This document shows positions 15,555 to 57,642 of a DNA stretch of 64,000 nucleotides, one piece after another. A program made the translations under genes and the position numbers. This stretch comes from Schizochytrium sp. TIO01 (lineage: Eukaryota > Protista > Bigyra: Labyrinthulomycetes), in the NCBI GenBank assembly GCA_004764695.1, contig SMSO01000014.1, forward strand, positions 1,731,648 to 1,795,647, read 5' to 3'. Positions within the stretch are counted from its first letter, which is position 1, and each line of letters opens with the position of its first letter. The notes under the pieces were generated by a model. That model was not told where the DNA came from, did no database searches, and worked only from the letters and a program-made list of their open reading frames with translations.

Positions 15555-15695
15555 TTATTTTTGAGAGTCTTCTATTTGCTCTCCCGCTTCAACGTCTTGA
15601 ACTCCTTGTACATCTTCTCCTTCGTGTGCTTTTTGCGTTCCGTGTGATTTTTCACCTACTCTTGTTTGTGCTTCTTGTTGTTGTTGTAGTTGTTG

Positions 15696-15726
<31 letters not shown>

Positions 15727-39100: not shown

Positions 39101-42100
39101 AGCTCGTTGCACCACCTGAGGCATCTCAATTTCAGAAGGGAAACTTGATCGAAGAGTTTTTGCGCTCTGCAGTGCAAGTTTGACAAACTCCTGAGTCACA
39201 GTCCATTCTGAAGAGCGAAGACGCTCAGATTGTGCAACATGAGACATGTAATCAAAAACCATTCGCAAGGCTTGTTCCCAGCCAGGAAGTTGCGCATGAC
39301 GAGTTGCACTTGTAAGCAGAATCCGCAATGAAGAGCAGCATACTTGCTCAACCGTACCAGGGTCACCGTCAATGTGCTGAGGTGTGGAATTATCATTCGC
39401 TCGATTTCGCCTAAATTTTCCAAACTTGGGTCTTTCTTCATTAACTGTGGCTCGCGCAAGCCCTGAGCCAGTTGTCAAGCGTGTCTGTCGCCAAGACAAA
39501 CATAGTGATATAGCACGAGAAACGCACTTGGGATGAAAGCTCCGTCCTATAATATCGATGACGATACGCCGCAAAGCAATTTGTTCCTGGGAAGTGGGAC
39601 GAATTCGGATGGCTGCGTCCCACAAATCATGAAGAAGATTTTCAGTATCATTCTCCATTTCTCCGGGCCAATCAACAGAGTCTGGCTCGATTTTCAGTGG
39701 GGATCTATCCAATTCCTTACTTGTTCCGCTGAGCCCGAGCACGGTTGCCACAGCAGATTTACGTAAGACGGCTTCAAAGAACCAAATCTGATCATGATCA
39801 ATATGAAATGCTGAAAGTTTGTTGAGCCACTCCAGCAGGATTACAGTGGATTGATGAAGAAGTTCATAAAGATCGGGAAATTCAACCAGCTCTCTAGTAA
39901 TCTTAACAAGCTCATCTGCCCACTGGTCAGACCGCCCAGAACCACATCGAGGATCAAGTCCATCAACAGGCACACCAGTGGCACGGTACCACATGAACAA
40001 TTCATCCCGACTTACCAAGGGTGCTTCCTTCAGAGCGATGTAATCGTACGCCCCTTCAAGTGGAGCAGTGCTTCCTTTGAAAAGCGTATCAAGTGGGACC
40101 GCTCCACGTAAGACAGGAATACGAGGGGCGGCCCCTTCTCCCATGCTACCATGGCTATAGGTAGAAGCAGTAGATAGCGTTGGAATGATTTGATTTCCAC
40201 CAAGAGCAGGCATTGTCTGGGATCCAGTCTGAGGAAGCTGATTGGAGTGAATATGGTGACGCAGGCTATCTGCAGATAAAGGGCTACCCCTGGTATTTCC
40301 ATCAGCAGTGGCGCTTCGTTCATGGTGGTGATGAGGCTGCAAGTGTTGTTGATGCAATGTCGGGTGAGCCAGGGACTGTCCATTCATCGGTGAAGATGTA
40401 GATGCGGTGGGTGAACTGCGGTGGTTTACTTTAAGAGGCTGAGCGTCATCAGCGGTACGACGACGATGCAATTCTGTATCTGATGACACGGCTGCACAAC
40501 CGCATGATGCTTTTAAAGCACATTGGAAGGAGAATGGTTCATGTTTGCAGAATACTCGAGTGAGGCGTTTACACGCAGTTTTGAATTGCGGCCATAACTG
40601 TTGAATAGATTCAATAACTTCTTGAGCATGCATTCGGACACTTGTGCAAGGAAAGCACATGAGAGCAATGCTGAGAGTAAGTAAAGGCTCCCCTCCAACA
40701 TCAAGAAGTTCTGGCATTTTGTTCAGCTCTTCGTTGGTTTTGCAAGAGCGGAGATGCAGCCAAAGGCGCAAAAGTAACGTGAGTTGGCGAAGGTATGTCA
40801 GTACAACACGCGTACAGGTTGGTGCACGGCGTACAGAGCCTCGAATTTCCCGTGCAAGTTTTAGAAGGACACGAATGCGAATGTTGTCATCCGGTGCAGT
40901 ACCTACAATTCTCTGCAATGCATGCGACATAGCAGTTGCAATAAACCAATCTGCGTGTAGAAGTAGAGTCACGTCAGGCAGCGGTGCTTCGCCAGACGAA
41001 GGGCGCCCCTGAACTGGTGAGCATGACAACAAAGGAAAAATATAAATGAGCTCACGGAACACATCGAGCGCAGGATTTGATCGTTTTTTGAAAAAAGCAG
41101 ATCGAAGTCTCATTGTTTGAGCAATCTGCAATTCTGCGCCATACTTGTCGGTAAGGTTCCGCGCTCGAAAGGCAACTTCATTGCCGCCTTCAAACACATC
41201 AGAAGTGTTGAGAAGATGTTGAAGCTCTAGTACCAGTCCATTGGACGTAAATATATAAGTATCGAAAGATTGGCTTTTAGTAGGGTCTGCCCAAGCAAAT
41301 GGGTAGCCACGGTGGTCACCCATTGGATCATGCAAACTTTGAGTGTCGTCGCCAGAACTGCTGAAACCCATACAGCCATCCCACAACAAGGTAGGGACTA
41401 AAGGGTATTCTGACTGCCCCATTGCTTCGAGACCTAAGGCATGTTGCAAAGAGGACATCATACCTGTGATTGTGCGCACCGAAGCTTTTAATATGTCTTT
41501 GAGAGCTGCAAGATTGGGATCTATCTGGCCATGGTGAAGACAAAATGCAGTCTCCCGGAAGACACTGGTCCCTGGGCCAAGAATGTCCCACAAAGCACGA
41601 ATACCCACGGTTGCGCGATTTGCGGCTGAAGATGAGCAACGCGCCAAGTCGTCAGGAAGTTGTAATAGAGAAGGAAAAGCCTTATCACGGAAAATAGTGA
41701 GATCATGAGCTGCAAGCTGAAGAAGGATGTGTTTGCAAACGACGAGATTCTTCGGCAAAGCTGGCATGCTGTGCTGTTGAGCATGAGATATTGAAGGGGC
41801 CTTACTGAAGGATGATGTTGAGCCATAAGATGCAACTGAAACCACAGAGCTTTGGCTGGTACGGTTTCCGCTCATGAAAAGTGACCCCACATTACCTGTG
41901 TCTACCTCAATGGTATTAACAGGAGATGACGAAGTGTTTACTGTTGGGGGTGCACTATTTGCGAGATTATAAGAAGATGAGCCACTGAGAGAAGTAAGTG
42001 CCTTTGATTTTGAGCGCTCAAACACCTCCATATAAATTGATTCAAGAGCACGGCGGTTTAAAGTTGTTACATATGTAAAAGCACTATGCGACATACGAAA

Positions 42101-43399
42101 CCGTGTTTGCATAGGCACATAGTTCTCAAAAGCATCAAAGCCAGTTGCAGGGCGCGCAAAGCGATGGTTACGTAAAGATCGTAGAATAATCTCCAACGAA
42201 TGTGTCACCTTTCGTGGTTCCGAGAGGTGTCGCAAAACTCTTTTGGAGAAAAATGATGCATAATTTGACTCATGAAAGTCGCGAGGCGCATGAATCAAAA
42301 TCGTGAGCATTAAGGAAAGAGCCGCGGCCTTCAACTCTTCAATTTTAGCCAATTGTTCTGCAAGTTTAAAGAGACGATTTGCAACCACGTCATTAAAGAC
42401 AGATTTCCAGTTTGCATCTCGCTCAAGGAGAGGCTGGAAATTAATACGTTCCAAAATAGGTTCGAAAGCAAGAAGCATGACGAGACGCGACGCTTTCTCT
42501 GTTTTTGGTTGTGCCAACTGGTCCACAAGTAGAGCAAGTACCTCTCGAGCTACTTTTGAATTAGTGAGGGTCAAATCGACAAATTGCCATACTAGAAATG
42601 ATGGTCGCAAATTAAAAATGTGGGTGATTAGACTTGGTTTCCCTTTCACCGCAAGACCAATCAGACTTGCCCATGAAACTTGAGCTTGAGCAATTATACG
42701 ACTCATAATATCTCGTGGAACTTGCTCTCGGCCAGAGCCAGCTGGTGGCTTAAGCGAGCAGTGCGCTAAGGCAAGCTCCTCAAGTTTAGTCCAATCCCGA
42801 CTCATTGCTGCTTCATTGCCACCAGCAGCATCATAGCGTAACAAATGATTCAAAACGTCACCAGCACATCTTGACCATAGCACTTCTACTAAACGGTTGT
42901 TTCTCACTGAAATACCTGGAAATTTGTCTTGGGCAGAAAATGGCAACTCTGCCCATGCGAGAACTGCAGCGAGTAAGCCTTCGAACATTGGCCGAGGAAG
43001 GGCAAGCCAAGAACGCAGGCTTGAAACAAAGAAAGGGCATTTGCGAGGATAGTCTTCCCAAAGTGTCTGCATTAAGAATGAGTCCGGATGACCAGTAGAC
43101 ATATCTGGCATTCCACCAGAACTGTCATCAGAGGCATTGATAGAATCTAATTGTGCAATCTTCTGCTCGATACCCACAGCAAGATTTACTACGAAATCTT
43201 CAAGAAAAAACCACCCTTCGATTGCATTTACACTACTCTGACCACCTGACACATGGCGGGTTGAATCAGAATTTGTTGGTGTTGAAGCTCCAGAAGAAAG
43301 ACCTGGAAACGTTGCGAATCCTGTCGGCGTCGCCGGCTCCGAGCCTAGCGATTTCCGCGGGAGAGAGCCCCCTGTGCTAACGCTCTGTGAGTGCGACAT
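35963..43399 (-). CDS. Furry/Tao3/Mor2-like large helical scaffold (main ORF; probably continues in the +1 frame to 34756)
   Basis: Ordered blocks resembling the Furry N-terminal region: LSLMLTILIHAPRDF...SLEIILRSL, LVVCKHILLQLAAHDL, NRATVGIRALWDI, PALDVFRELIYIFPLL, LHADWFIATAMSHALQRIV, LRQLTLLLRLW, LMCFPCTSVRMHAQEVI. Track start 43426 is TTG; first ATG 43399. Confidence 0.65.
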   Translation of the reverse strand: MSHSQSVSTGGSLPRKSLGSEPATPTGFATFPGLSSGASTPTNSDSTRHVSGGQSSVNAIEGWFFLEDFVVNLAVGIEQKIAQLDSINASDDSSGGMPDMSTGHPDSFLMQTLWEDYPRKCPFFVSSLRSWLALPRPMFEGLLAAVLAWAELPFSAQDKFPGISVRNNRLVEVLWSRCAGDVLNHLLRYDAAGGNEAAMSRDWTKLEELALAHCSLKPPAGSGREQVPRDIMSRIIAQAQVSWASLIGLAVKGKPSLITHIFNLRPSFLVWQFVDLTLTNSKVAREVLALLVDQLAQPKTEKASRLVMLLAFEPILERINFQPLLERDANWKSVFNDVVANRLFKLAEQLAKIEELKAAALSLMLTILIHAPRDFHESNYASFFSKRVLRHLSEPRKVTHSLEIILRSLRNHRFARPATGFDAFENYVPMQTRFRMSHSAFTYVTTLNRRALESIYMEVFERSKSKALTSLSGSSSYNLANSAPPTVNTSSSPVNTIEVDTGNVGSLFMSGNRTSQSSVVSVASYGSTSSFSKAPSISHAQQHSMPALPKNLVVCKHILLQLAAHDLTIFRDKAFPSLLQLPDDLARCSSSAANRATVGIRALWDILGPGTSVFRETAFCLHHGQIDPNLAALKDILKASVRTITGMMSSLQHALGLEAMGQSEYPLVPTLLWDGCMGFSSSGDDTQSLHDPMGDHRGYPFAWADPTKSQSFDTYIFTSNGLVLELQHLLNTSDVFEGGNEVAFRARNLTDKYGAELQIAQTMRLRSAFFKKRSNPALDVFRELIYIFPLLSCSPVQGRPSSGEAPLPDVTLLLHADWFIATAMSHALQRIVGTAPDDNIRIRVLLKLAREIRGSVRRAPTCTRVVLTYLRQLTLLLRLWLHLRSCKTNEELNKMPELLDVGGEPLLTLSIALMCFPCTSVRMHAQEVIESIQQLWPQFKTACKRLTRVFCKHEPFSFQCALKASCGCAAVSSDTELHRRRTADDAQPLKVNHRSSPTASTSSPMNGQSLAHPTLHQQHLQPHHHHERSATADGNTRGSPLSADSLRHHIHSNQLPQTGSQTMPALGGNQIIPTLSTASTYSHGSMGEGAAPRIPVLRGAVPLDTLFKGSTAPLEGAYDYIALKEAPLVSRDELFMWYRATGVPVDGLDPRCGSGRSDQWADELVKITRELVEFPDLYELLHQSTVILLEWLNKLSAFHIDHDQIWFFEAVLRKSAVATVLGLSGTSKELDRSPLKIEPDSVDWPGEMENDTENLLHDLWDAAIRIRPTSQEQIALRRIVIDIIGRSFHPKCVSRAISLCLSWRQTRLTTGSGLARATVNEERPKFGKFRRNRANDNSTPQHIDGDPGTVEQVCCSSLRILLTSATRHAQLPGWEQALRMVFDYMSHVAQSERLRSSEWTVTQEFVKLALQSAKTLRSSFPSEIEMPQVVQRADQVWLRAERRRIWKLMQSIVGFDDVKIFAVQSVSNPPRTSLDGSTPTSNSHNRSGATDVNVSGRSFAQGDRQPISEANFRMIRELATQVGAQMLCLGPTSLGTVAPRPDEMLWAWFYYDEECTKSLKLIAPLLRNYLVAHWHVGDVEAAGGGTFGPYIERWFEEIQKQSLGQSHADAIFAAFSDAINAWLFRGSEHAMVRPLEPSAITLLAFAALVLASSHERPGFRSRAFGILDVVERSDSWARLETGNARGSALPYELHSASTLGQQTWASDSKTIEQAAEQASIILADRCSGIGASLLSHLCQRLPALYKAKLMRHAIQVCIAFAQSPSTRVCGTTSTFTAPQDPDFVPETPPHLVRTRKSRSNSARGSQRGGAEVDDIRVQVPHDSHGSRRAAHGTMELQMRQSVQKDMRRAQKSYFNLEEIWTAILDVLKVVENEKRAMGSTKVLVWDGRDALDMLLPLWRALCQNHATTVVDFLLAHILESSSPQGLPVHREIASFFLTAIAPEVFAASPNIILNNLVLGVLYRVNLSDVVRGLFAGPTSSPSSQRPRILQEWIQLALTQNADPIGHLSHNPEREQNLMTLLQSQRCVLQALNQCATGNRKLCAMAFPQMLTFSLCSIVGLNQRTPRTSTRDTRGAASACITQLLHALIHERLIRKHSRDAAADPMLAVTLPAHLTGPSTERLLVLAEASPLEYTKQELSEVVSAMVELLTICAPDGDLLHLWCQCLLLNALGLYQQQMLWKPSLMERCLSVYAILRTKISGPLYLVRGFAEVDEAVASWIEILGILRMSHQAMYNKSPDLLERTLFCISQLTAVQISPTLCKFILNIYATNAQNKQIEKLCQKLLLHSLPETLDEENVCIDALEMKLQDQITSELVLFEEQDEVFGNSEMETDDEDPNDLLSLSARLFCCGLLRMELLCVLLPIVTMGGLARGVLIEETISKLNLPAEIQDSLRAIILRPTDEQLLQSTCVALMDYKGAELFRVRLHYGLPPPNQTHNVHFPLRYIPNSSVTNRDLYATHSTRNIRFASTSDTNGHSS

Positions 43400-45299
43400 A
43401 AGACCTACTCCGGCACCAGAAAACAAGCTGTCTGCGCGGAGCAGGATTTACTTTCCCTCAGACAGCACACCTGTGACGGCACAACTCGAGTAAACAATCC
43501 ACCTCAGACGAAGAATTCGTTAAAGCTATCGAAATCGGATTTTCAAGGTTCCCAAACCTCAATTACAAGCTTCAACCACACTCCCAAGACAACGTATTAT
43601 ATTACCAAGTCTTCGCACCCCTTCAAGATAACTTCTCTCTGCCCACGTTGAGGTAAAAGTCACGCAACAATCTGACCTTAGTCACACAAAACAGGCTTTC
43701 TCGCACGCGAGACTTCCCGAGAAAGAAACTATCAGATAATAAAAATAACCGTGAAAACAGGTGTCTCCAGATCCTCAATCGGGCCACGAAACTGAAGCCG
43801 TGGAACCGGAGCCCCTAGATCCCTCAGCTTGTTTCACCGTCCAAAAGTAATTCAAGTTTGCGTGCCAATTACTTCGATTGATCCAGCGATAATCGATCGT
43901 CCAACGAATTGATCTAGTTAACTGCTTGCTATTTTCAGCACTACCTACGCAGCAATGAATCAATGAATCAATGAACCAATCTCTCTGGAACCAGTGCAAT
44001 CCAGCCTTGACGTTCCGCAGGCAACCAACCGGCGTTCTCTGCAACACCACAACCTCAATACAAAACAGCCAAATCGCGAAGAGTCACCAGAAGCAATCAC
44101 GCCGCCAAGGAGGAATGCCACCTAGATTTATCTACTCAACAAGAAGAAAGCACTGATGCCCTTACCGTATAAACCAAAGTCTATACTCTACTTTCGCCTT
44201 AATAACCCCACTATACCGTACAGTACAGTATAGCACGCGACACTATGCGTTATAGGGTAGAATGTAGAGTATTCCTCGGCCTACGCTCCTGTAAGAAACT
44301 CTTAGCTATTTAGCGAGCGAGCGATTGAAGCGGACGACACAGCGGGGCTCGCTTTTGCCCAGGCAGGCAGGCGAAGCGAGCTGTCTCCGTACGGCGGCTG
44401 ATGGACAGCCGGTCCGACTACGGTACCCAAGTTTAGTGAGAGCGCCCCGCACTGCCTCCGCTGCTGCCACGCCGCCAGAGCCGCAGCGGCCGGCAAGGGA
44501 CCTGCGAAGTCGAAACTCCGACTGTGATTTGTTTGCTTGCTTTCGCTCCTTTCTCTTTTCTCTTAATTCTCGTTTACTTTTTTTTCAAACAGAATTAATT
44601 AATTAATCATTCAATCAATTATGATTCATTCATTCATTCATTCATTTACTTACAGAACAAAAGAAGGTAGGTCTCTCTCTACCTAGGGTCCTCCTACGCA
44701 CTGCTAACACTACCGCTATCACTAGGAGCTGCCCTACGATGGTAGCATACAAACATACATACATTTATTTATATATATCTTTAGTACAGCGGTGGACTGG
44801 AAAAACAGAAACCATCGTCATCATCACCAAAGTAGAACTTAATCTTGATGATAGTGCGGCCTCGCGCTGGGGGAACGACCAAGACCGACATCCAGTCCTT
44901 TCCACAACTCCAGGGTCCTCTGGAGCGTGGTACTTCAGAGGTTTCTGACGGGATCCCTACGTGCGAGGCGAAGATCTGGGGTGTCTTGATTGTTCTTATT
45001 TTTACTCCAGCTTCTCATAAATCTCACCTTTCACGGCTGCTATATAAATAAATGCTAGTAATGTATATCTACTTATAAGTTATGGGCTGGCTGCCGCCAA
45101 GGTGGGACCAGCTTTGGTCCTTATTTTAAGGACCCCACATTGAGGTCGCGTTTCCCGTAGTTCTTCCATAGAGTAAAATAAGGTCGGTTTCTAAACGGCT
45201 ATATGATAACGAGAAAAGCAGGGATGATGATCATATGATGATGCCCTTGCTCTTGTCAACCTTGGTTTGTCTCGTTTGTTTTCTTGGATTCTTTGCAGC

Positions 45300-45500
45300 C
45301 TGGGCTGCCAGTTGCGATGGTTTTTATAGGATGGCATTTATGTGGTTTATTGGAGTAGGTTTTTATGTGATTGCATTTGATTCTTTCTTGGGGCGTGGGT
45401 GGAGTATAGATAGCTATTATGACCTGTCTGGGTCTTTACTTGCGGTTATCTTCCATCTGGAAGGAATCTGTAGTATCTGATTATGATGATATGATGCTTC
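45300..45500 (-). mobile_element. Possible non-LTR retrotransposon APE-endonuclease remnant
   Basis: Minus strand gives ...PDGR* then, in another frame, QVIIAIYTPPTPQER (IIAIYTPPTP = 45391-45420), like the APE 'IYAP' motif; no reverse transcriptase motif seen. Confidence 0.25.
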
Positions 45501-46508
45501 GCTTTGATTGCTGATATCTGGGCAACTTTGGGGAAACATTGCAAGTCTGGGCTCATCAGCCACGGGGAACTTGGAGGGTGAATATAGAAAACTGACCCGT
45601 GGGACCGCGGCTACTGGCGAAGCCGTGCACTCAAGAATCTAATATCTTCAGCAAACAGACATATTTCATTAAACGGAAGTGTTTTCACACGTCATCCTAT
45701 TTTTTAAAGAATATCAGAATCGGTGAGAGCACCTGTGTCGAAGGGGCCTAAACAGGATAATACAAATAACGATTCCTCGATCTGTATGGTCGTGCAAAAG
45801 AAGCTTCTCGTGCGGAAATAGCGGTGGCGATAAAAATTCACCTCCAAACAAGCCATCATTGTCAAAGCTTACAGGGGTTACTTTTTTTCTTTTCGTTGCC
45901 ATTTTTTAATTTTTGCTTAGTAGCTGCCTAGTAGTAGTTAGTGCATTTCTAAAAACAGTGTGCGAGCGGGTAAGAGTTTGGGGTGTTATGGAGTGTCACC
46001 GGCAATGAAAATGGCCCATCAAACACCTTCTGCAAGAACGTTGCACTCCCCTTGCGCGACTGAGGTCTTTGCCAAAGTCGCGGTCAGGAGGCAGCCACAC
46101 AGCTTTTCTGTTACTGAGGCTGCTGTTGCAACGGAAGGCGAGAAGCTCTAGCTGCGACCCCAGGTTTTGCCTTGTGGTGGCGTTATAGCTGCAACGCGAA
46201 CTAACCTACAAGAGACCAGGCGTGCTGAGACAAGAAAGACGACACAAGAAAACAGACAAAGTGAAGAAATTTGTGGAACAGAGCACCAACAAGCTAATCC
46301 TTTGCTTCTTTTTGGCGAGTTGAGGTTAATAAGTATTGCAGAGTTGCATCTGCAGATAAAAATTGCTTGCATCGAAAGGTGGCGGAGGTGAGACACCATA
46401 CTGGTCAAGACTGGAAAAGGAAACAACAGGTGTTGGATGTTGAACGCGGTGGTTTACCAGTGACAATTAGACTCACGAGGCTTCACAGAGGATAAAATCA
46501 AAACATAA

Positions 46509-49500
46509 ATGCAGCGTCTCGGTTCCTCCGTTAAACCGGTACGTGCCCTGCTGGTCATTGATTGTCAGAATGATTTCGTCCCAAGCGAAGATGGTTCGCT
46601 TGCTGTGCCAGACGCAGAAGCTATCATCCCAGTCATTAACAAATTAAGAAGCAAGGAGTTCGACTTTGTATACCTCTGCCTAGATTGGCATCCTTATAAT
46701 CATTGCTCGTTTCGTACAAACAATCCTGGCGCAGATCTATTCGAATGTGTACATCTACCGACGACTGGAAGTGCACAGATCATGTGGCCAGATCATTGTG
46801 TGCAAGGAACCCATGGTGCAGAACTACACAAAGACCTTAAGGTTGAAGTCTCAGATATCTTTACGTATGCAGGTTGCAACCCTCAGCGAGATAGTTATTC
46901 TGTCTTCAAAGATAACGGTTCATCGGTGTTGACAGAAATGCGTGACCTACTAGAAGAAAATGGAGTGACAGAAATTTATGCTGTAGGCCTTGCTACAGAC
47001 TACTGTGTTCAATACACACTACTAGACGCAAAGTCGCTATTGCAGGGTGTTGAAGTATTTTACATCGAGGATGGATGTCGAGGTATTAGTCCGCAGGGAG
47101 TGAAAAATGCTGTTGACGCCTTCAAAAGTGAAAAGGTTCATATCATCAAGTCAGAAGGATCCCAAATTGGGAATATTCCTAATCGTAGACTTCGAATTGA
47201 TGGTACCTTAGAAATAACTAAGCGCAATGACAGAGTCGCATTGTTTGTGGAAGTGGATCGAGTCTATGAAGCTGTTATCTTTCGCACAGCGACTGGCACA
47301 GCGTGGGAAAATGATGTTGCAAATCTTGTCAGGTCTTCAATTGTAAACCAACTGTGTTCATGGAGTGGGAAGAATGTATTGCATGCCTGCTGTGAGATGG
47401 GAGATGTCGATACGCTGAGACAGGTACTCTTAATTGCTGGCAAAAGCCTGAATCTTTCAGTACGCACAAGACGGGATGAAAACGCACTCATGCTTGCTAT
47501 CCAAGGGAAAGAGCCTAAACATCGAACAAAAGTCGTCCAAACTCTTTTGGAGTACGCCGACGACAACCAACTTCGAGAGCTCATATTTAGTCAGAGTTTG
47601 CAATTCAACCTCAGTGCACTCATGTTTGCTTGTAGAGATGGTTTGCCAGAAGTTGTGGAGACACTTTTGAAGTACGATGCTAAATCTTCTTTACAACTGA
47701 GGTCCGCATTTGGTAAAACACCAATTATGTATGCTTGTATGACAAATACAACAGAACATGCCACCGTGATTGAATTATTGTTGCGTTCACAGCCAAAAGT
47801 TGAAGATCGCATTGCGCTTCTGCAAGAGACTGATAAGGAAAGGTGGAACAGTCTTCATTTTAGCGCAAAATCTGGCTGTTTTGCACGTGTAGACTGGAGT
47901 CGCGCTTTGGAAGGGTATGAAAACACTTCTCGTCTTCCTATCAATGCAAAGACTCATTCTGGAATAACTTTTCTTCACTTGGCTGCATTTAATGGGCGCT
48001 TTGAGGTCATTCGTTCACTTCTCGATAGTTGCGACCCAAACCGCAAGCGTAAACTCATGGATGCAATTTTGAAAAAGGGCCTCCGACATCGTGTAAAGGT
48101 GAATGTAAAGATCAAGGGCACTGATAACGTAGAGTTAGACTTAGCGATTCAGCGACGTCACCTGGAGTGTGCTCGTTTGCTGTTGCGCTTAGGGTGCCAC
48201 GCTGGATCATCATCACCTGAGCAAATGCAAGAGCTTCTTCATCGTCTTGTACTCATGGGTGATGTTGAGGCATGCGAGAGTATCCTTAATTTTGCTGATG
48301 AAAATCGAATTACCATTGATGATGCTCTTGTAGAGACAACACAGCGTATAGAGCATCCGGAAACTTGTACTGTTTCATTTGCCAATCGTACAGATCCAGT
48401 TGGCCAGTATCTGTATAAATGCAAAATATGCCAGACCTGTGTCTGCCTTGTCTGTAAAGATCGTTGCCATGGTCCTGGGTCATGTCGCAGTAACTATTCA
48501 AAACTCGACTTTGAACACTTTCCGGACAAGGATTGGGAGCCCTGCGGTGTTGTGGTTTCACAGTGTGATTGCAACCGTGATACGTGCTGTGCTACAGCTG
48601 CAACAGACATTCGAGAAATTGAAGGATATAGATTTATTCCCCACCCAGTCAGAACAAGTCAAGTCCGTCTCACCGCAGAGTTTTTTCGCTTATCACAATC
48701 GATTGCTCGAAACATGCATAATGTGTGGGCAAAAACCCTGAGCCTTCAAGGCTGGCGCTATGGTCGAGACAAAGATGTCGAAGAGCGTCTCCATCCTCAT
48801 CTTCTCCCGTTTGACTCATTGTCTATTGAAGGCGCAAAGTACAATATGGATATGTCTGTTGAGACACTGAAAGTTATTCTTTCACTTGGATATGAGCTTG
48901 TTCGTGAAGTAGAGGTCCCAAGCTTTGAGCGTTCACAATTATCCATTAGTACAGAACCTTCTAGCCCACCGACGTTAATGAAAGCAGTGTCATTAATGAC
49001 GCCAGGTCCAGACAAACGTAGTAGGTTGAAAATGGCAACAACTTCTGATCTTCATGCAGGTGCAGCCAAATATGCTGAATTCGCTTGGGATATCTCACGT
49101 CCAGACTGTGTACCTCTGGATACAAGTGGATTTTTAATACCGCATCAATTAGATAACCTTATTGATCGAATTGCTTCGAACTCACATGAGGTTTGGGCTA
49201 GTGAAAAGATTCGGCAGGGATGGAGGTATGCTCCAAACCGCAACATTCGTAAAGATCTGAAACTCAATGCGTCTTTAGTTCCGTACTATGTTTTAACATC
49301 AGAGGAGAAAAATCAACTCCGAGAAGGGGCTATCGAGACTATTAAAGTAATTTTGATGTCAGGATGGATTATTCGGCGACCAGAAAACTTTCATGATTCT
49401 GACGACGAAGCGACAAGCCCAGCTTCTCCAGACCCCAACATCTCACAGGGGCGCCGCGATCGCCGCTTCAGTACGGCCATGATGCCTCTACGGCGGCGTG

Positions 49501-52500
49501 ACACTACTCAACCAGCAAAAATGACACTCGCATTTCGTCAGCTGAAGCATATCCGCCGCAAACTTTTCAACCAATTTCTTTTCGCAGCGGTCCGACGTGG
49601 GCAGATCGAATCTGTGAATATTTTACTTTCCAAACGATCAAGTATGCATGTAGGGGCAAATTTGAACGCAATTGATGAGTTTGGACACACTCCATTATAT
49701 ATTGCGATCAAGCGTGGTCATGTTGCAACGGCGCAACGCCTCTTGACACTAGGGGCGAACATAGAACTCCGAGACATTAATGGGCTCACACCTCTTTCGC
49801 TTTGCGCCTATTTGGGTAACTTAAAATTGTGCCAAGTTTTGATTCAACATCAAGCCAGGATTCTTGTGTGTGATGCAATGGGATTCACCCCCCTGCACCA
49901 TGCTGCTAACCAAGGACACGTTGAGGTGTGTAAGTATATCACAGAGCGTCTCCAGCAGGAACATCAAAGCAATGATATTGTAGATTTGAACGCAGATATG
50001 GTGGACTATGCTAGCTTAGGTGGCGTAATAGAGAAAGTTTCCATGGAAGATTCATCGAGCTACCTTGATCATACCTCTCCAGCTCATTTGAAGCGGAATG
50101 CTACGACCGCCCGAGAAAGCGCCCAATCTAAATGGCGTGTGTTTCGTATCATGTTCCGTTCACGAGGATTAGGTAGTGAGCGCTCACGAGCTGCGCGAAT
50201 AATTCCTGCCGAAAATCTAACAAATTCTCAACAGCTATGGACTCCAAGCCTTGCTGCACAAGGCTCTAACGTGCAACGCATGCCAATTCACCAAGGTACA
50301 CAAGGTTCTGACTTGGGCGAGCTATCACTCAGTGATCGAGGCAATCCTGATGACGGAACCTATCATACTGATGGATTAGGTGTTGGTCCATCAAAAGCCG
50401 CAATGCAAGTAATCCAAAAACCATCCATGAGAAATTTTACACCGGATCCAACACCAGAACCTGGCATGGCACTTTCCATGTACCCCCCCATGTCCCTTGC
50501 TGTTCAGTCTGACAACATCGAGATTGTTGAGCTGTTAATAAAACATGGGTCAAACCCTATGTTGGCAGATGGCCCAGCTGATCGAAGCGCAATGCTGAGC
50601 CCTTATATTCGTGCATTGCTCAGACATATTGAAATGAGTGCCAAAGTGGAGTACCTGCAGGACCGCATTGCCAAACGTGCTCTATATGAAATGCAAAAAG
50701 CTCAAACAATGCGTAGTGCATCTCGTAGAGGTCCGAACAATGGGCAAATGCAAGAAAATGGTCACCTTGGAACAGTCCGCATTTCGATGAGTTCAATTTT
50801 ACATGGTATGGACACCTTTCGTAACGAAGGCAACGGAATGGAAAATGATCCTCCAAGTCTAGATTCAGTCGAGCCGCACCCGAAACGAAAAAATACCAAT
50901 ACTATCATGAGCCAACCCATTTCGACGCCAAAGTCAACAGCAATTATGTCAAGACCATTGTCTCTTCGCAGACGCCTTGGATTGGTAAAACGTATAGATA
51001 CGCATATAGGGAACTTGTTTGGTTTCGCAAACCAAGTCGGTGGAGCGAATGTAGCAAACGTTGGCGATGATGTGATTGCAGAAAGTGCAGATGAAGAATC
51101 TGCTGGGCGAGCAAGCTCGCAGATCAATTCTACTCGGGAGCTTGATCAACTGTTGGAAAAGGCACAGAGAGATAAAGATAGAGCTGCACAGATGGTCGAG
51201 GCGATGAGTAAGTCTTCTAAAGTAAGTGCATGGCGTCGACGAACAGCAATTAAAATGTGTGTCAGGGAGACTAGTCTCATGCTGCTTTTGATTATCTCCT
51301 TTGGCTGTTTAGTACAGCTCTCGCCAGATTACAATATGGCTGCAGAGGGTACATGGGCTATTCAACTTGAGACTTACTTTGAAAACAGTACCGCCGATGT
51401 TGACGGCCCAGATGATTTTATGGGATGGATCCGGGATGAGTTTATATCGAAAGACCTCATGCGCAGTGAAAACTATACTAGGCTTCGCAACTCAAATTTT
51501 GTATTTGGGGCAATTTCCCTCAAAATGTACGATCTGAACGCTCTTGAGTATACCACTGAGTACTATCAAAGCTCAACAAGCTCCGACTCTAAGATAGAAT
51601 CTACAAGTCTACCAAGCAACTACATGTCCCTCTTACTGCCCCAGGCTAACCCAGAAGACATGGTTACCGTTTTCGATGAAGGAACTGTAAATTGGACTAG
51701 CCCCGGCGTCTATGTGATTTCCATGGAACTCAACTTATACAATCCTTTCTACGAAGTCTATGGTATAGTTGAGGTTCAGCAAACTTCCACGTTTATTGGA
51801 CTCAGTTCACTCAGCATGGACGTTAAGCCATTTCGCCTTGAGTATGGTCGTTTCCCGCCGTCCCGAACTTTTCAGATTGCTGTATTCGTGATGGTTGTGC
51901 TCTTTACTATTACAAAGGTTCGCAGCTGGCTTCGCTCTCAGCATCGCTCCCGTCGCCGCCGGCGGGAGGAGTGGATGATTGAAATCCTTTTGATCGGAAT
52001 TTTGCTATTTGATGTTTACGTCTATGAATCTACAAAGAATGTGATAATGGACTTACGCAACAGCGTCGACGAGTATATGGATTTGACTGGTGCCCAGCGG
52101 CTTTTGGAGATCGAGAGGCGCTTTTTTGCAGTGTATTTTCTCCTTAGTGTACTTCCGCTTCTAAAAGCTACTCAGACAATTCCTTCTATTGGACCTGTAG
52201 TCGTAGCCCTGTTGAGCACCATGACAGACACAGCTGTGTTGATCTATCTGCTAGTTATTTGCACAGCTTGCTTTCTGTTGACACTAACTTTTCATGTTGG
52301 CTTCGGCATTTCAGTGACTGAGTTTTCGACCATGATATCAACATTCGAGAATCTTTTTTTAACTCCCTTTGTTGAAACTTGGAATGGCATTACTCATACC
52401 GGCCACAGTTCATATCTTGGAGCTGTTTTGTACGTGTTCTACATTCTCTTTGCAACAGTCTCACTCAATCTTCTTATCGCTATCGTTACAGATGTATATC

Positions 52501-52835
52501 CGTCAGCACGGTCTGCATCAGATCGGGAATGGGAGGAGATTATCACTGGGGGAATTGAAGACAATCTTCGCGACCTTTTACATTCGAAAAATATCTCCTC
52601 AACAGATTTACGCATCGAAACATGGAGCGAGGCTAAATTGCTGCTGGGCCGTGATGGTCGCAAGCATTGGAGCAAGACAAAAGCAGAAGAAAGTAACGAA
52701 GATCCTGCTGAGCTTGCAAAAAATGGAGCATGCACAAAATCTACCTCTGAAAAGCTTGTAGACTTATCTGAGCAAATCAAGCAACTAACATCAATTGTTG
52801 AATCTCTGCGAAGCGAAATAGTAACTTTAAAGTAA
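46509..52835 (+). CDS. Multidomain cation channel: nicotinamidase-like domain + ankyrin repeats + UBR-box-like zinc finger + 2 RyR repeats + ankyrins + polycystin/TRP-type 6TM channel
   Basis: Single 2108-aa ORF. aa ~11-215 PncA motifs (LLVIDCQNDF, GSLAV, DWHP, WPDHCVQGT, DSYS, GLATDYCV); ankyrins (GKTPIMYAC, GHTPLYIA, GFTPLHHAANQGH); CxxC-rich finger; RyR repeats (HNVWA...QGWRYG...HPHLLPF; HEVWA...QGWRY...LVPY); S1, luminal polycystin-like domain, S2-S6 ending LNLLIAIVTDVY...SDREW, then a coiled coil. Confidence 0.9.
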   Translation: MQRLGSSVKPVRALLVIDCQNDFVPSEDGSLAVPDAEAIIPVINKLRSKEFDFVYLCLDWHPYNHCSFRTNNPGADLFECVHLPTTGSAQIMWPDHCVQGTHGAELHKDLKVEVSDIFTYAGCNPQRDSYSVFKDNGSSVLTEMRDLLEENGVTEIYAVGLATDYCVQYTLLDAKSLLQGVEVFYIEDGCRGISPQGVKNAVDAFKSEKVHIIKSEGSQIGNIPNRRLRIDGTLEITKRNDRVALFVEVDRVYEAVIFRTATGTAWENDVANLVRSSIVNQLCSWSGKNVLHACCEMGDVDTLRQVLLIAGKSLNLSVRTRRDENALMLAIQGKEPKHRTKVVQTLLEYADDNQLRELIFSQSLQFNLSALMFACRDGLPEVVETLLKYDAKSSLQLRSAFGKTPIMYACMTNTTEHATVIELLLRSQPKVEDRIALLQETDKERWNSLHFSAKSGCFARVDWSRALEGYENTSRLPINAKTHSGITFLHLAAFNGRFEVIRSLLDSCDPNRKRKLMDAILKKGLRHRVKVNVKIKGTDNVELDLAIQRRHLECARLLLRLGCHAGSSSPEQMQELLHRLVLMGDVEACESILNFADENRITIDDALVETTQRIEHPETCTVSFANRTDPVGQYLYKCKICQTCVCLVCKDRCHGPGSCRSNYSKLDFEHFPDKDWEPCGVVVSQCDCNRDTCCATAATDIREIEGYRFIPHPVRTSQVRLTAEFFRLSQSIARNMHNVWAKTLSLQGWRYGRDKDVEERLHPHLLPFDSLSIEGAKYNMDMSVETLKVILSLGYELVREVEVPSFERSQLSISTEPSSPPTLMKAVSLMTPGPDKRSRLKMATTSDLHAGAAKYAEFAWDISRPDCVPLDTSGFLIPHQLDNLIDRIASNSHEVWASEKIRQGWRYAPNRNIRKDLKLNASLVPYYVLTSEEKNQLREGAIETIKVILMSGWIIRRPENFHDSDDEATSPASPDPNISQGRRDRRFSTAMMPLRRRDTTQPAKMTLAFRQLKHIRRKLFNQFLFAAVRRGQIESVNILLSKRSSMHVGANLNAIDEFGHTPLYIAIKRGHVATAQRLLTLGANIELRDINGLTPLSLCAYLGNLKLCQVLIQHQARILVCDAMGFTPLHHAANQGHVEVCKYITERLQQEHQSNDIVDLNADMVDYASLGGVIEKVSMEDSSSYLDHTSPAHLKRNATTARESAQSKWRVFRIMFRSRGLGSERSRAARIIPAENLTNSQQLWTPSLAAQGSNVQRMPIHQGTQGSDLGELSLSDRGNPDDGTYHTDGLGVGPSKAAMQVIQKPSMRNFTPDPTPEPGMALSMYPPMSLAVQSDNIEIVELLIKHGSNPMLADGPADRSAMLSPYIRALLRHIEMSAKVEYLQDRIAKRALYEMQKAQTMRSASRRGPNNGQMQENGHLGTVRISMSSILHGMDTFRNEGNGMENDPPSLDSVEPHPKRKNTNTIMSQPISTPKSTAIMSRPLSLRRRLGLVKRIDTHIGNLFGFANQVGGANVANVGDDVIAESADEESAGRASSQINSTRELDQLLEKAQRDKDRAAQMVEAMSKSSKVSAWRRRTAIKMCVRETSLMLLLIISFGCLVQLSPDYNMAAEGTWAIQLETYFENSTADVDGPDDFMGWIRDEFISKDLMRSENYTRLRNSNFVFGAISLKMYDLNALEYTTEYYQSSTSSDSKIESTSLPSNYMSLLLPQANPEDMVTVFDEGTVNWTSPGVYVISMELNLYNPFYEVYGIVEVQQTSTFIGLSSLSMDVKPFRLEYGRFPPSRTFQIAVFVMVVLFTITKVRSWLRSQHRSRRRRREEWMIEILLIGILLFDVYVYESTKNVIMDLRNSVDEYMDLTGAQRLLEIERRFFAVYFLLSVLPLLKATQTIPSIGPVVVALLSTMTDTAVLIYLLVICTACFLLTLTFHVGFGISVTEFSTMISTFENLFLTPFVETWNGITHTGHSSYLGAVLYVFYILFATVSLNLLIAIVTDVYPSARSASDREWEEIITGGIEDNLRDLLHSKNISSTDLRIETWSEAKLLLGRDGRKHWSKTKAEESNEDPAELAKNGACTKSTSEKLVDLSEQIKQLTSIVESLRSEIVTLK

Positions 52836-53031: not shown

Positions 53032-54948
53032 TTAATGCTCTACATCAGATTCATCTGAGGAGTCGAACAAAGACTTCGTTTTAAATGCGGCCGAGCTTGC
53101 TCGGGACGCAGTTATAGGCCTATGCTCCCTTTTCAATTGCCCGGCTGACACTGAAAGAGGCAACTCTGAGTTTCCAAGATTTGATGGAAGGTCTGACAGA
53201 ACTTGGGTAGTGTTCTCTTGTACTGCTAAGACTTTTCGGGAGTTTTTCAACACTTCCGGGGAGTGGAATCCTTGTTCGTCCTCACTAGCTTCGGTATCAC
53301 TGTCAAATAAGTTTGCTAAGAGCTTCCGGCGATGAGTTGATTTCTCGTTTTGAAAAGCTGACAGTTTTGGTGCCTTAGAAGAATATGGCACATCTTGCGC
53401 ACCAGAATTGGAAGGTATCTTGCTATCAGACAACTTGGTTGGAGGAGATAAAACGTTCCTATCTGTTTGGCTATTGAGAATAGCGGTTGGTAGTTTTGCA
53501 AGACCTGCAAGTTCTTTGGGTGGAGGTATCTCCAGTGGCTTTTCTGCGATGAACGGATTTTTAGAGTTTCGAGGAAAAACATCCTGCTGTATATTTGGAG
53601 TCATATCAATGAGCATTGTGTCTTTATTGTTGGAATCCATTCCTGCTCCTGAACTTCTTGATGCCATATTAACTTGGTTCACTTGAGGAGGAATTGATGG
53701 CTTTGGCCTTTCCACTCTCGTCTCAACTGGGACATGTTCTTCTATATCATTTGGTGGCTGTTGATATTGAGATGTCGCCATAGCCAGCCCTTTGCCCTTA
53801 GGGGAGCATATTTGATCACCTTTAGAAAAAAGTTCTGTAAGAGAACTATTGATGAGTTGGCGTTTCTTATCTATTTTGCTGTCATCAGGACTAACTTCAG
53901 GTATAATTGACGATTTTTTAATGGATCCAGATACGTCAGATTTATGAGTCCCCATCATGCGTTCAAGCTCTGCAAGGTCGTCAGGTTCATCATCGATATC
54001 GTTGCTAGCATGTTTGCGGCCATCTTCGGAGCTCAAGTAGTGTCCCTCATCAGGAGTATCGACATGCAGTTTGAGGTGAAGGTTTCCCGTCGTATTTGAG
54101 TTCGGTTGTGCCAAAACATTGGGCGATGGTGAGGTAGCCACACCTTCCAGGATATTGTGAGTAGAATGCTGTTTATATTTCTTTGCCTCTCCGCCTTTGT
54201 CATCTTCTTCGTCATCAGAAAATGGGTTCATAGAAGGCTGCTGCAAGCGAGGTTTAATACCCCCCTCCATAGTTTCTTTCATGGGTTCAGGAAAGTCCTT
54301 GAGGCCCTTTTCAATAAGAGCAGCAATTTCTTCATTACTTGGACGTGAGACAAATGTGGTATCCCCAAGGCAGGCAGAAGAAGGGGATCTAGCCTGTATT
54401 AAGTGTATTTCGTCTTCGTCTTCGATGCGACTTTCGAGAAATTGGTTATAAGAGAGCAGTGTGATTCGGTTGCGTGCATCATCAAGATCAGTGGCCATTG
54501 TTTGTGCTTTCAGATCTAACTCCTGAATGCTTTGTTGCAATTTCTCTGCACGTGCTGTCATGGCATCTGAGAAGATTTGAAGATATTTGAGCAGCTCTGA
54601 CTGTTGGTTGTTTCGACTTTGGAACTTCATTGCCTCAGTAGCTTTCATTAATCTTTCGTCAGTGCCTGCATGCTTTGTGTCATCCAGATGATGTACATTT
54701 GTAGCTCCTGGTCTAGCATCGGGTGCATGTTCTGTCATATAAGACGACGAATCGGTCCTCAGTGCAGTGGCGTCAATCTCTTCACCGTATTGGGAGCTAT
54801 TGTTTCCATCATCAGGGAGTTGGTTTCGTCTCGTGCCAATTGCAAGTCGTTCTAAAAGGTCTTCACGACCTGTGAGTGGAGCGCGTTCAGTTGCATGGAC
54901 AGAGTCTTGGGCAACGTCAAAGCCCGGCATCTTGCATGCTCCTTTCAT
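53032..54948 (-). CDS. WASHC2: WASH complex subunit 2 (FAM21)-like
   Basis: Head motif LLKYLQIFSDAM...IQEL...LLSYNQFLESRIEDEDE resembles the FAM21 head; disordered tail with LF-acidic motifs (NLFDSDTE, SLFDSSDESD). Track start 54966 is GTG; ATG at 54948 or 54930. Confidence 0.72.
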   Translation of the reverse strand: MKGACKMPGFDVAQDSVHATERAPLTGREDLLERLAIGTRRNQLPDDGNNSSQYGEEIDATALRTDSSSYMTEHAPDARPGATNVHHLDDTKHAGTDERLMKATEAMKFQSRNNQQSELLKYLQIFSDAMTARAEKLQQSIQELDLKAQTMATDLDDARNRITLLSYNQFLESRIEDEDEIHLIQARSPSSACLGDTTFVSRPSNEEIAALIEKGLKDFPEPMKETMEGGIKPRLQQPSMNPFSDDEEDDKGGEAKKYKQHSTHNILEGVATSPSPNVLAQPNSNTTGNLHLKLHVDTPDEGHYLSSEDGRKHASNDIDDEPDDLAELERMMGTHKSDVSGSIKKSSIIPEVSPDDSKIDKKRQLINSSLTELFSKGDQICSPKGKGLAMATSQYQQPPNDIEEHVPVETRVERPKPSIPPQVNQVNMASRSSGAGMDSNNKDTMLIDMTPNIQQDVFPRNSKNPFIAEKPLEIPPPKELAGLAKLPTAILNSQTDRNVLSPPTKLSDSKIPSNSGAQDVPYSSKAPKLSAFQNEKSTHRRKLLANLFDSDTEASEDEQGFHSPEVLKNSRKVLAVQENTTQVLSDLPSNLGNSELPLSVSAGQLKREHRPITASRASSAAFKTKSLFDSSDESDVEH

Positions 54949-55801
54949 ACGAACTGTTTTGGGCACGTTGTGATGCCTTATTTATTATATTTCGAGTCCG
55001 AGGCTCCTCTATCCAAATAAGTAGCTTCTTTGAAGTCTCTGTATCATATGGCAACGAACATAGTTTTAAAGAATATTTATTTTTAAAAATAAATTGACAG
55101 AGATTTCAAACGTAGGCTGATACGTGCCTTCTCTAAAACAATGTCTGCATGCGATCAGACTTGCGTTGCTATGACGAGAAGCAAAACTTTCCCATGACAG
55201 GCTCATGAAATTGAACAAAGTCCGTCTAAACTTGGTACTAGATATTTCGATATTTGTAAATCATCCTTATAAAAAAGCGCGTGGTTCTCAGACGCAGATT
55301 ATAGAATCATCATTTGACTTGGTCAAATTATACAGATGCACACAGAAGTCATGTGAAAGAAGGACGCATCTCCCAAAGTTGCAGTGAACTCCCGTCGTAC
55401 CTCAAGAGGCAGGTAGCAACCTAAAAATTTTAACTTGACTAGGATTGGTGCAGTGGTGCAGAAGATTAGAAAGCACAAAGTAGTAAGCAATAAAAACTTC
55501 AAGTAATAGAAATGAGAGAGGTATGCGTTGTTGTGTCCAAGCGACGAAAAAATGTGTACGTCAATGTTTAGGTGAAAATCAGTAGGGTTTGCTTGCAGTT
55601 GAAGCGACAGCTGCGGCAAGAGCGCTTTCAAATTATGTGTTTGAAAGGGTGATTGCTATCCAAGTATGTGGGCAGGCGGAAGCATTGCACGTGCGCAGCA
55701 TCTGCGACGCCTTCAGCTGCTGCTATGAAGAAGATGTCGAGGGAGTGAGAGTGGTGTGTAAAAAGGATTCTAGGGGAGGGAGAAACAAACAATCAATCAA
55801 T

Positions 55802-56560
55802 TTAGAGCACACCGGTCTCCTTGAGCTTGCTGATGACCTGCTCAACGGAGTCAACCTTGATACCGGCCTTGCGCTGGGGAGGGTCCTCAACCTGGGTGTA
55901 TTGGACGTGGGGGGTGAGGTCAATGCCGAGGTCCTCTGCCTTGATCTCCTCAATCTTCTTCTTCTTGGCCTTCATGATGTTGGGGAGGGTGGCGTAGCGG
56001 GGCTCGTTGAGGCGAAGGTCAGCGGTCACAACAGCGGGGAGGCTGAGCTCGAGCTTCTGGAGACCACCGTCAATCTCGCGGGTCACGTTGACCTTCTTGC
56101 CGTCAACGGTCACCTCAGAGGCGAAGGCAGCGATGGGGCTGTCGATGAGACCAGCGAGCATCTGGCCAGTCTGGTTGTTGTCACCGTCGATGGACTGCTT
56201 GCCGAGAATGTACATGTCGGGGGACTCCTTCTCGCCGATGGCCTTGAGGATCTTGGCGACGGCGAGGGGCTGGAGCTCAGTGTCGTGGCGCATGTCGGTA
56301 ACGATGTGGATACCGCGGTCAGCACCCATGGCAAGGGCAGTGCGGATGGTCTCCTGGGCGGCCTTGGGGCCGACGGAGATGGCGATGACCTCCTTGGCGA
56401 TCTTCTTCTCCTTGAGGCGGACGGCCTCCTCGCAGGCGATCTCGCAGAAGGGGTTCATGGACATCTTCACGTTAGCGAGGTCGACGGCAGACTTGTCGGC
56501 CTTGACACGCACCTTGACGGCGTAGTCAAGGGTACGCTTCACTGCAACCATAACCTTCAT
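55802..56560 (-). CDS. ETFB: Electron transfer flavoprotein beta subunit
   Basis: [96 protein letters not shown]; strong C/G third-position bias typical of a highly expressed gene. Confidence 0.98.
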
Positions 56561-57642
56561 TTTGGCTGGGGTTTGTTTGTTTGACAGTCGAGATTACAAC
56601 AAGGGCACCTGTGCGGGCTCCTGGACACCAATTCTGTGTATTATTATCATCGCGTTTGCATAATCGTTGTACAATGTCAACAATCGTTTTACACATCCAC
56701 TTCATTCGTTAGTCATTCCTCTTCATTCTTTCCAAATAATTAGATCGATCCATTCCGTTCGTCTCACCCCCACAAAAACACAAGCACAAAAGAAAGAGCA
56801 TTATTGATAACACCACAAACCACCCTGACACGAAATCCTCTCGAGGCCTCAACTGAGCTTTCTTTCCCTCGATCGCGCGCCTTCCCATCTCACTGTCATG
56901 CTTCATTTCTCTCCTCCCTGCCTCATAGTGAACTAGCCCTCGCACCATGGTATCATTGAGATGATACGATATCATGGATATAAGTATATATTACTATATA
57001 CATATTATACGGAGGTTTCGTCATTAGGAGATAAGAGGAGAGATCCATAAATGGACACATAAAGAAACAAGAAGTACAAATAGATATAGCGACCGACATG
57101 GCCTCAGGACCATCGCTTCATCGGCGTCCAGTCCATCGCACGAGCAGCGAGGGCGAGGCGGCCGTCATGATGCAAGGCAGACGAGGGCAGGTAGCTAGGT
57201 GGTTGAAGTAGGGAGTGTCGAGGAGCGGGGTGGTTTTTCAAAAAAGCCTTGCAGACTCCACGAGGAGGCCATTAGCCGCATTACCGCATCGTGTCTCCTG
57301 CGGCGCTTCAGCAAGGTCTAGCAGGTGTAGTGATGCTGATGCAGAGGCTCTTGTGCTGCTTGCTGTCTGTCTGTCTCTGCGGGGCGTGGCGTCGTGGCGG
57401 AGCGACCTCTCCGACGGGCGCGAGCTACGTACGAGCGTTGAGTGATTGCTCGAGATTTGCCTTCGACTTCTCTCCAGGTTTGGCTTATTATAAGAGGTCT
57501 CTGCTTATTCCCTTTAAACTTCTCTTTTACAGAAACAGACAAACAGACATTTAGATAGTGAATACATAGAGAAAGAAAATCACCTCTTTTGTGCGGGACT
57601 AATCCCCACTACCACTTACGGTAGCACTCTGCATTACGGCGA

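Follow-up and report, generated by a model that had tools for sequence, protein, structure and literature searches.

A nicotinamidase-derived domain without its triad lysine on a polycystin-like channel of Schizochytrium

The 64,000-nucleotide stretch of DNA from the marine thraustochytrid Schizochytrium sp. TIO01 analysed here (the window) carries on its forward strand, at 46509-52835, a gene in which a domain related to the nicotinamidase PncA is joined to ankyrin repeats, a pair of RyR repeats and a polycystin-like channel module. As judged from its sequence, this N-terminal domain is a descendant of the PncA-type nicotinamidases without the lysine of their catalytic triad. Since the lysine is replaced in every channel-fused copy, an enzyme-derived ligand sensor appears likelier than an enzyme coupled to a channel. 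The reading favoured here, which we consider about equally likely to be right or wrong, is that the lysine-less domain is a ligand-sensing pseudoenzyme regulating a polycystin-type cation pore. In the mechanism proposed, nicotinamide or a closely related pyridine would be bound in the cytosol at the metal site of the domain, and the ankyrin/UBR-like/RyR-repeat scaffold would relay this occupancy to the channel gate, glutamates (Glu1956) forming a ring that lines the pore. The domain would be a pseudoenzyme, at most a very slow enzyme, and housekeeping nicotinamide salvage would be left to a separate nicotinamidase-like gene with a full triad and to NAPRT. The protein would thus be a functional analogue of vertebrate TRPM2, whose NUDT9-H domain lost catalysis (PMC6461439). 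The nature of the ligand, its coupling to the gate, the ion selectivity of the pore and its tetramerisation are points that we infer.

To our knowledge, channels which have domesticated an enzyme as ligand sensor are rare, and they are mechanistically informative; TRPM2 is the textbook case. Compared with TRPM2, the window protein has another enzyme fold, that of nicotinamidase, on another TRP subfamily, that of the polycystins. It carries the signature expected of a pseudoenzyme sensor, with one catalytic residue gone in every copy and the rest under tighter conservation than the pore. Should the channel be gated by nicotinamide or a related compound, the consumption of nicotinamide adenine dinucleotide (NAD+) would be wired directly to cation or Ca2+ entry in a protist, and this link between NAD turnover and Ca2+ signalling would be directly testable in a genetically tractable thraustochytrid. 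The initial annotation of the window knew of no described channel with this architecture, and indeed no published description of a PncA-like/ankyrin/RyR/polycystin arrangement was found in the literature searched, nor any paper there pairing a nicotinamidase with a chanzyme.

The PncA-like domain

The PncA-like domain (residues 11-218, 46539-47162, forward strand) was delimited by Pfam, PDB matches and alignment. The Pfam Isochorismatase family is matched at residues 13-214 (72 bits, 7e-20), and the best solved-structure match of the N-terminal 235 residues is the PncA of A. baumannii (2wt9, E 4.9e-47). Nicotinamidases are matched by these residues far better than other isochorismatase-like enzymes, and the closest bacterial-type PncAs share 47-48% identity with the channel-borne domain. 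The NCBIfam PncA equivalog NF008623 is scored at 169.3 bits, slightly below its cut-off of 174. The description of a full PncA/Pnc1-type domain, given in the initial annotation, holds thus for the homology and not for completeness, because the triad lysine has been exchanged.

The catalytic lysine is the third member of the nicotinamidase Asp-Lys-Cys triad. At its position the window protein has Ala121 (codon 46869-46871, forward strand), which aligns with the lysine of the KG.....DSYS motif in both 2wt9 and 9u8m. The triad is therefore incomplete, with Asp18 and Cys166 in place and lysine replaced by alanine. What the domain shares with PncA/Pnc1, besides the fold, are precisely these two triad members together with the metal ligands Asp59, His61 and His96 and the cis-Ala162 of the oxyanion hole, all kept at sequence level; it differs from them by the alanine and by its fusion to a channel. 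This alanine is invariant across the seven full-length relatives. When all fused copies (about 20) are considered, the column holds A, S, T, I, V, C, L or H and in none of them K, whereas lysine is present in 118 of the 120 nearest stand-alone PncA homologues. The two exceptions, P0010 and P0011, lie on contigs only 1.8-2.7 kb long and fall, in the domain tree, with the fused clade, for which reasons they are probably fragments of fusions. No conserved basic residue which could stand in for the lysine was seen near Ala121 in the alignment of the full-length relatives.

The PncA-like module is nevertheless the best conserved part of the protein. Its identity to six relatives amounts to 91, 79, 67, 58, 54 and 53%, compared with 87, 68, 58, 39, 26 and 35% for the segment from the S4-S5 linker to S6 in the same six. 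Within the clade called type A, which comprises the window gene and its close relatives, the residues of the aromatic/pyridine pocket and of the metal site are invariant. Strong conservation combined with the loss of the triad lysine suggests that the domain is under strong selection, though probably not for efficient catalysis.

These residues also bear on an unlikely rival explanation, in which the lysine-less domain would still hydrolyse nicotinamide, or form a nicotinoyl-cysteine thioester, its turnover timing or ending the activation of the channel, as in the TRPM2 chanzymes of invertebrates and choanoflagellates. Such residual chemistry is favoured by the type A clade, which conserves Asp18, Cys166, cis-Ala162 and the metal ligands, and there is a precedent for a TRP channel whose enzyme module works very slowly (PMC11479946). 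Against it stand the absence of the triad lysine from every fused copy and the lack of a nearby conserved basic substitute, given that the activity of the nicotinamidase SpNic, where the pyridine nitrogen of the substrate binds the metal, reportedly requires the Lys-Asp-Cys triad (PMC6271260). The orthologue P0005, with a threonine at the position of Cys166, argues in the same direction.

The intact Asp/His/His metal site is also compatible with a pseudoenzyme sensing something other than nicotinamide, such as nicotinate, nicotinamide mononucleotide or nicotinamide riboside, another aromatic amide, or a divalent metal (Zn, Fe or Mn). The loss of the lysine may have reshaped specificity, and the family is a modular one, with relatives bearing EF-hand, RGS or NUDT9-H domains. 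The pocket residues are, however, those of genuine nicotinamidases, in line with the identity to the closest PncAs given above, and such a change of ligand looks improbable.

Gene, relatives and paralogue

The gene consists of a single open frame of 2108 codons plus stop (46509-52835), which begins with ATG and contains neither an internal stop nor a frame break. A frame of 6.3 kb in DNA of 45% G+C is far beyond chance expectation. Expression was approached by placing Logan contigs on 45200-51199; these came from four small runs, which belong to three studies. In three runs, from separate studies, a contig begins precisely at 46042, and depth is zero over 45200-46041 in the four runs, apart from one which begins at 45940. 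It is this empty intergenic stretch upstream which indicates that the contigs are transcript assemblies. The contig starts and the upstream coverage gap define a probable 5' untranslated region of about 467 nt (46042-46508, forward strand). Its sole ATG, at 46437, opens a short upstream frame of eight codons (46437-46463). One contig of 4369 nt spans 46042-50409 without joint or indel, covering the nicotinamidase/ankyrin junction and both RyR repeats, and a contig of another run ends about 190 nt beyond the stop codon, as extrapolated from the record coordinates. Compared with the contigs of other strains, the window shows 12 coding differences, nine of which are synonymous. The fusion is thus probably transcribed as one mRNA, and the gene is a genuine single-exon thraustochytrid gene with no intron. 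The join at 47100-47400, for which a spanning cDNA had been called for initially, is crossed unbroken by the 4369-nt contig, a probable RNA-seq product.

Relatives were sought with the N-terminal domain, in a search restricted to long proteins, and with the channel part. The former gave seven proteins of 1959-3051 residues, the window product included, in which a PncA-like domain and ankyrins were confirmed by Pfam; RyR repeats are present in six of the seven, the one without RyR being P0006. The relative from Hondaea fermentalgiana (2148 residues) shows 87% identity in the PncA-like domain, and the other carriers come from JGI contigs and from an MMETSP transcript marked as complete (1975 residues). 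The channel-part query retrieved the same set and two more proteins. The fusion occurs in at least nine independent full-length proteins, transcripts among them. A HMMER pass of the channel region against 1.84 billion representatives then yielded 174 relatives at E<=1e-3, and a PncA profile built from 120 stand-alone homologues detected the PncA-like domain in about 20 of these. Two fused copies are EukProt transcripts of euglenozoans, namely the prokinetoplastid Papus ankaliazontas and the diplonemid Namystynia karyoxenos. The PncA-channel fusion is therefore found in distant eukaryotes, stramenopiles and euglenozoans. In databases the relatives are named "Ankyrin repeat domain-containing protein 1", "Ryanodine receptor 3" or "nicotinamidase/pyrazinamidase".

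A chimeric assembly or the joining of two genes in one model, either of which could have produced such an architecture artificially, is extremely improbable: this explanation is effectively refuted by the open frame, by the same fusion in the independent full-length proteins and transcripts, and by the contig bridging the domain junction. The single uninterrupted frame from PncA-type domain to channel, as first annotated, is thus confirmed and is conserved in independent assemblies and transcriptomes.

The Schizochytrium genome itself (64 Mb in 37 contigs) was scanned for further copies. Three loci were found with the PncA profile, namely the window gene, a paralogue and a separate open reading frame, and two matches with Pfam PF00857. 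The paralogue, detected by the PncA profile, encodes 1839 residues on the reverse strand (L006:2159-7678, that is G000:C33, about 4690658-4696177). It has the same layout as the window gene (ankyrin, two RyR repeats, ankyrin, PKD channel) and is nearly identical to P0130. Its PncA-like domain is degenerate, with the Asp, a metal Asp, a metal His, the Cys and the Lys all replaced. Together with P0130, the Hondaea protein P0009 and P0008, it forms a degenerate type B clade, which is nested in the fused labyrinthulomycete clade of the domain tree with a support of 95/81. This nesting indicates that the fusion is older than the duplication, after which one copy lost its pocket; on sequence grounds, it has been preserved in the other copy, the window gene.

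The type B proteins provide the main argument for another alternative, in which the PncA fold would be a mere structural vestige, an assembly or scaffold module of the cytosolic arm that binds no small molecule. In the paralogue, P0009, P0130 and P0008 the fold has outlasted the replacement of Asp, metal ligands, His and Cys, and their clade lies within the fused one. In the clade of the window gene, by contrast, all pocket and metal residues except the lysine are invariant, and conservation exceeding that of the pore would scarcely be expected of a domain with no ligand site. For the window protein we therefore hold the purely structural explanation to be quite unlikely.

A few points nevertheless weigh against the pseudoenzyme-sensor reading, or against the evidence assembled around it. 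Asp18 and Cys166 are conserved though it is not obvious that pure binding would need them, so that covalent chemistry or slow turnover is possible, and the threonine of P0005 at the Cys166 position breaks the conserved set. The retention, in the paralogue, of a domain with a destroyed pocket implies that the fold also has a ligand-independent structural role. On the channel side, the selectivity filter was assigned from a model and weak alignments. Lastly, the runs used for the transcript carry the label "RNA?", which is a guess, and the RNA nature of their contigs is presumed.

The third locus of the PncA scan is a stand-alone nicotinamidase-like open reading frame of 311 residues on the reverse strand (L010:1447-2382, G000:C24, about 2030388-2031323). 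It possesses the Asp/Lys/Cys triad and the metal ligands, but is very divergent and sits on a long branch of the tree. A NAPRT-like frame of 558 residues was located on the forward strand of another contig (L007:499-2175, G000:C30). The presence of these two frames means that ordinary nicotinamide salvage needs no channel-borne domain, and they point to Preiss-Handler salvage running separately from the channel. The possibility that the window gene is the only nicotinamidase of the organism was accordingly rejected, the PncA profile having found a separate lysine-bearing frame.

Further insights come from P0006, a JGI protein of 3051 residues with a cluster mate, P0276. It displays two extra modules N-terminal of its PncA-like domain, at residues 190-397 and 646-792. 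They correspond to a SMODS-associated NUDIX domain (Sa_NUDIX, 26.8 bits) and to a NUDT9-homology stretch, which matches human NUDT9 (1q33, E 1.2e-12) and residues 1278-1397 of Nematostella TRPM2, its NUDT9-H domain (6co7, E 2.3e-11). Among the relatives fetched, NUDT9-H is confined to P0006/P0276. The Nudix box of P0006 looks degenerate by eye, and both of its enzyme-derived modules may for this reason be catalytically dead. When NADases, sirtuins and PARPs cleave NAD+, they release two products, nicotinamide and ADP-ribose. Domains derived from enzymes acting on both products are thus found on one polycystin channel, which supports a theme of NAD-metabolite sensing without proving it. We would tentatively extend this theme, at clearly less than even confidence, to a protist polycystin family gated by the products of NAD+ cleavage, nicotinamide through the PncA-like domain and ADP-ribose through NUDT9-H in at least one member. 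On that reading, gating by NAD metabolites would have been invented independently of TRPM2, and the PncA-like domain would be the first nicotinamide-dedicated receptor domain on an ion channel.

The window protein resembles TRPM2 in being a TRP-superfamily channel equipped with a domain derived from an enzyme of NAD-metabolite turnover. In TRPM2 this domain has lost catalysis in some lineages and acts in ligand gating (PMC6461439, PMC11479946), the human NUDT9-H domain being catalytically dead (PMC6461439). The differences are equally clear: the channel is TRPP-like and not TRPM, the domain is an isochorismatase-like cysteine hydrolase and not a Nudix one, and it is N-terminal instead of C-terminal. 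No TRPM or Nudix match was found by Pfam in the window protein, which is thus not a member of the TRPM2 family. By analogy, it may nonetheless work in the manner of TRPM2-type channels. A precedent for nicotinamide as the ligand is provided by its agonist effect on the TRPV channel OSM-9/OCR-4 (PMC5064019).

Channel module and cytosolic arm

The channel module (residues 1570-2026, 51216-52586, forward strand) was defined by an AlphaFold2 model, by Foldseek and by Pfam. PKD_channel is matched at residues 1788-1997 with 28.7 bits, above the gathering score of 22.4, and Ion_trans with 26.2 bits for a cut-off of 25; the relatives reach PKD_channel scores of 46-64 bits. The model of residues 1540-2040, obtained from a 36-sequence alignment, has a mean pLDDT (predicted local distance difference test) of 86 and a pTM (predicted template-modelling score) of 0.79. 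It shows in order a pre-S1 helix, S1, an alpha/beta S1-S2 domain of about 180 residues, S2-S4, the S4-S5 linker, S5, two pore helices, S6 and a long post-S6 helix. In the DNA, the pre-S1 helix and S1 extend to 51317 and S2-S6 occupy 51864-52508, followed by the post-S6 helix. S4 has few charges.

When this model was compared with the PDB by Foldseek, the first 40 or so ranks were taken exclusively by PKD2, PKD2L1 and PKD1/PKD2 complexes, TRPML1 coming next. The PKD2/PKD2L1 matches have E values of 3.7e-14 to 1e-10 and TM-scores of 0.51-0.64 over about 465-510 columns. The S1-S2 extracellular loop (residues 1604-1785, 51318-51863, forward strand) is modelled as an alpha/beta fold, with helices and a beta-sheet, resembling the TOP/polycystin domain, and it is included in the PKD2 superpositions of about 500 columns. 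No Pfam match to Polycystin_dom (PF20519) was obtained in this loop of the window protein; the relatives P0157, P0265, P0135 and P0184 do match PF20519. A polycystin/TRPP-like fold of the six-transmembrane pore, already proposed from the sequence on first inspection, is thus supported by the model. What is shared with PKD2/PKD2L1, which are TRPP or group II TRP channels, is the six-transmembrane fold, a large S1-S2 domain that is TOP-like in the model, the two pore helices, an acidic filter residue and the NLLIAI..D.Y motif of S6. In contrast, sequence identity to the window channel is only 12-15%, and the cytosolic arm of about 1,540 residues has no counterpart in the matched PKD2/PKD2L1 chains of 429-484 residues.

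The predicted selectivity filter is the FVETWNG segment between pore helices 1 and 2 of the model, which contains Glu1956 (52368-52388, forward strand). This glutamate aligns with the filter glutamate of a NavAb-type PDB chain (Ion transport protein), in a weak match, and with that of an LGE stretch in the relative P0007. The filter of PKD2 is LGD, to which the LGE of P0007 is similar, as opposed to FVETW in the window protein. The channel is presumably tetrameric, and a ring of four Glu1956 side chains would then be in keeping with a cation pore permeable to Ca2+. The two termini are expected to lie in the cytosol.

The arm preceding the channel starts, after the PncA-like domain, with a first ankyrin-repeat array (about residues 291-595, 47379-48293, forward strand; limits from alignment A1), recognised by Pfam Ank families with a best value of 4e-49. 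It is followed by a conserved Cys/His-rich module (residues 596-700, 48294-48608, forward strand), lying directly N-terminal of the RyR pair, whose predicted fold resembles UBR boxes. UBR boxes are readers of N-degrons. As to the zinc finger announced by the initial annotation, zf-UBR was rejected by sequence, no Pfam match being obtained at E up to 1, and the likeness of the module to UBR boxes is one of predicted fold.

The tandem RyR pair (PF02026) spans residues 709-956 and is scored at 154.6 bits over two stretches (8.7e-46). The first repeat was located by Pfam at residues 709-797 (48633-48902, forward strand), and the second, corresponding to the other Pfam stretch, was placed by a conserved block of alignment A1 at 49134-49376 on the same strand. 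Both the ankyrins and the two RyR repeats were thus correctly recognised from the start. A second ankyrin array follows (about residues 1016-1150, 49554-49958, forward strand; Ank_2 at 1081-1147, Ank at 1059-1089 and Ank_5 at 1050-1098). Then comes a short third block (about residues 1301-1375, 50409-50633, forward strand), with Ank_KRIT1 at 1307-1346 and weak Ank matches. The linkers on both sides of this block are poorly conserved and probably disordered. Beyond the channel, the C-terminal tail (52740-52832, forward strand) has a heptad-like pattern suggestive of a coiled coil, for which Pfam gives weak matches of coiled-coil type alone (ATG16, E 0.009; Shugoshin_N, E 0.12).

The composition of the arm varies among the relatives. 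An EF-hand pair occurs in P0157, three RyR repeats in P0135 and P0133, and an RGS domain between RyR and ankyrins in P0183.

The oomycete PKDRR proteins are likewise stramenopile PKD-type channels with two RyR (R) domains (PMC7399828). In these, the R domains are C-terminal of the channel, and the family was described as restricted to oomycetes (PMC7399828). The RyR repeats of the window protein, unlike those of PKDRR, lie about 600 residues ahead of the channel and are embedded in ankyrin arrays. Membership in PKDRR was rejected on this domain order (R domains at residues 709-956, channel at 1570-2026) and on the labyrinthulomycete host. In the full text of the PKDRR paper (PMC7399828), a term search met neither isochorismatase nor nicotinamidase, and ankyrin only in connection with ITPR homologues. 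PKD channels bearing RyR repeats are thus not limited to oomycetes.

Neighbouring features of the window

Two reverse-strand open reading frames of the window, at 15555-23018 and 35963-43426, both have exactly 2487 residues, the first being C2CD5-like and the second a different protein. An origin by duplication was rejected (26% nucleotide identity, no BLASTP match) and the equal length is a coincidence. Downstream of the channel gene, a convergent frame of 644 residues with no Pfam match is located at 53032-54966 on the reverse strand. About 200 nt separate the stop codons of the two genes, whose 3' untranslated regions may for this reason overlap. Further on, the local G+C fraction rises to 0.53-0.56 at 55500-56600, compared with about 0.42-0.47 in most flanking windows. 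Two overlapping frames lie in this rise, one at 55589-56584 on the forward strand, with no Pfam match, and one at 55802-56560 on the reverse strand.

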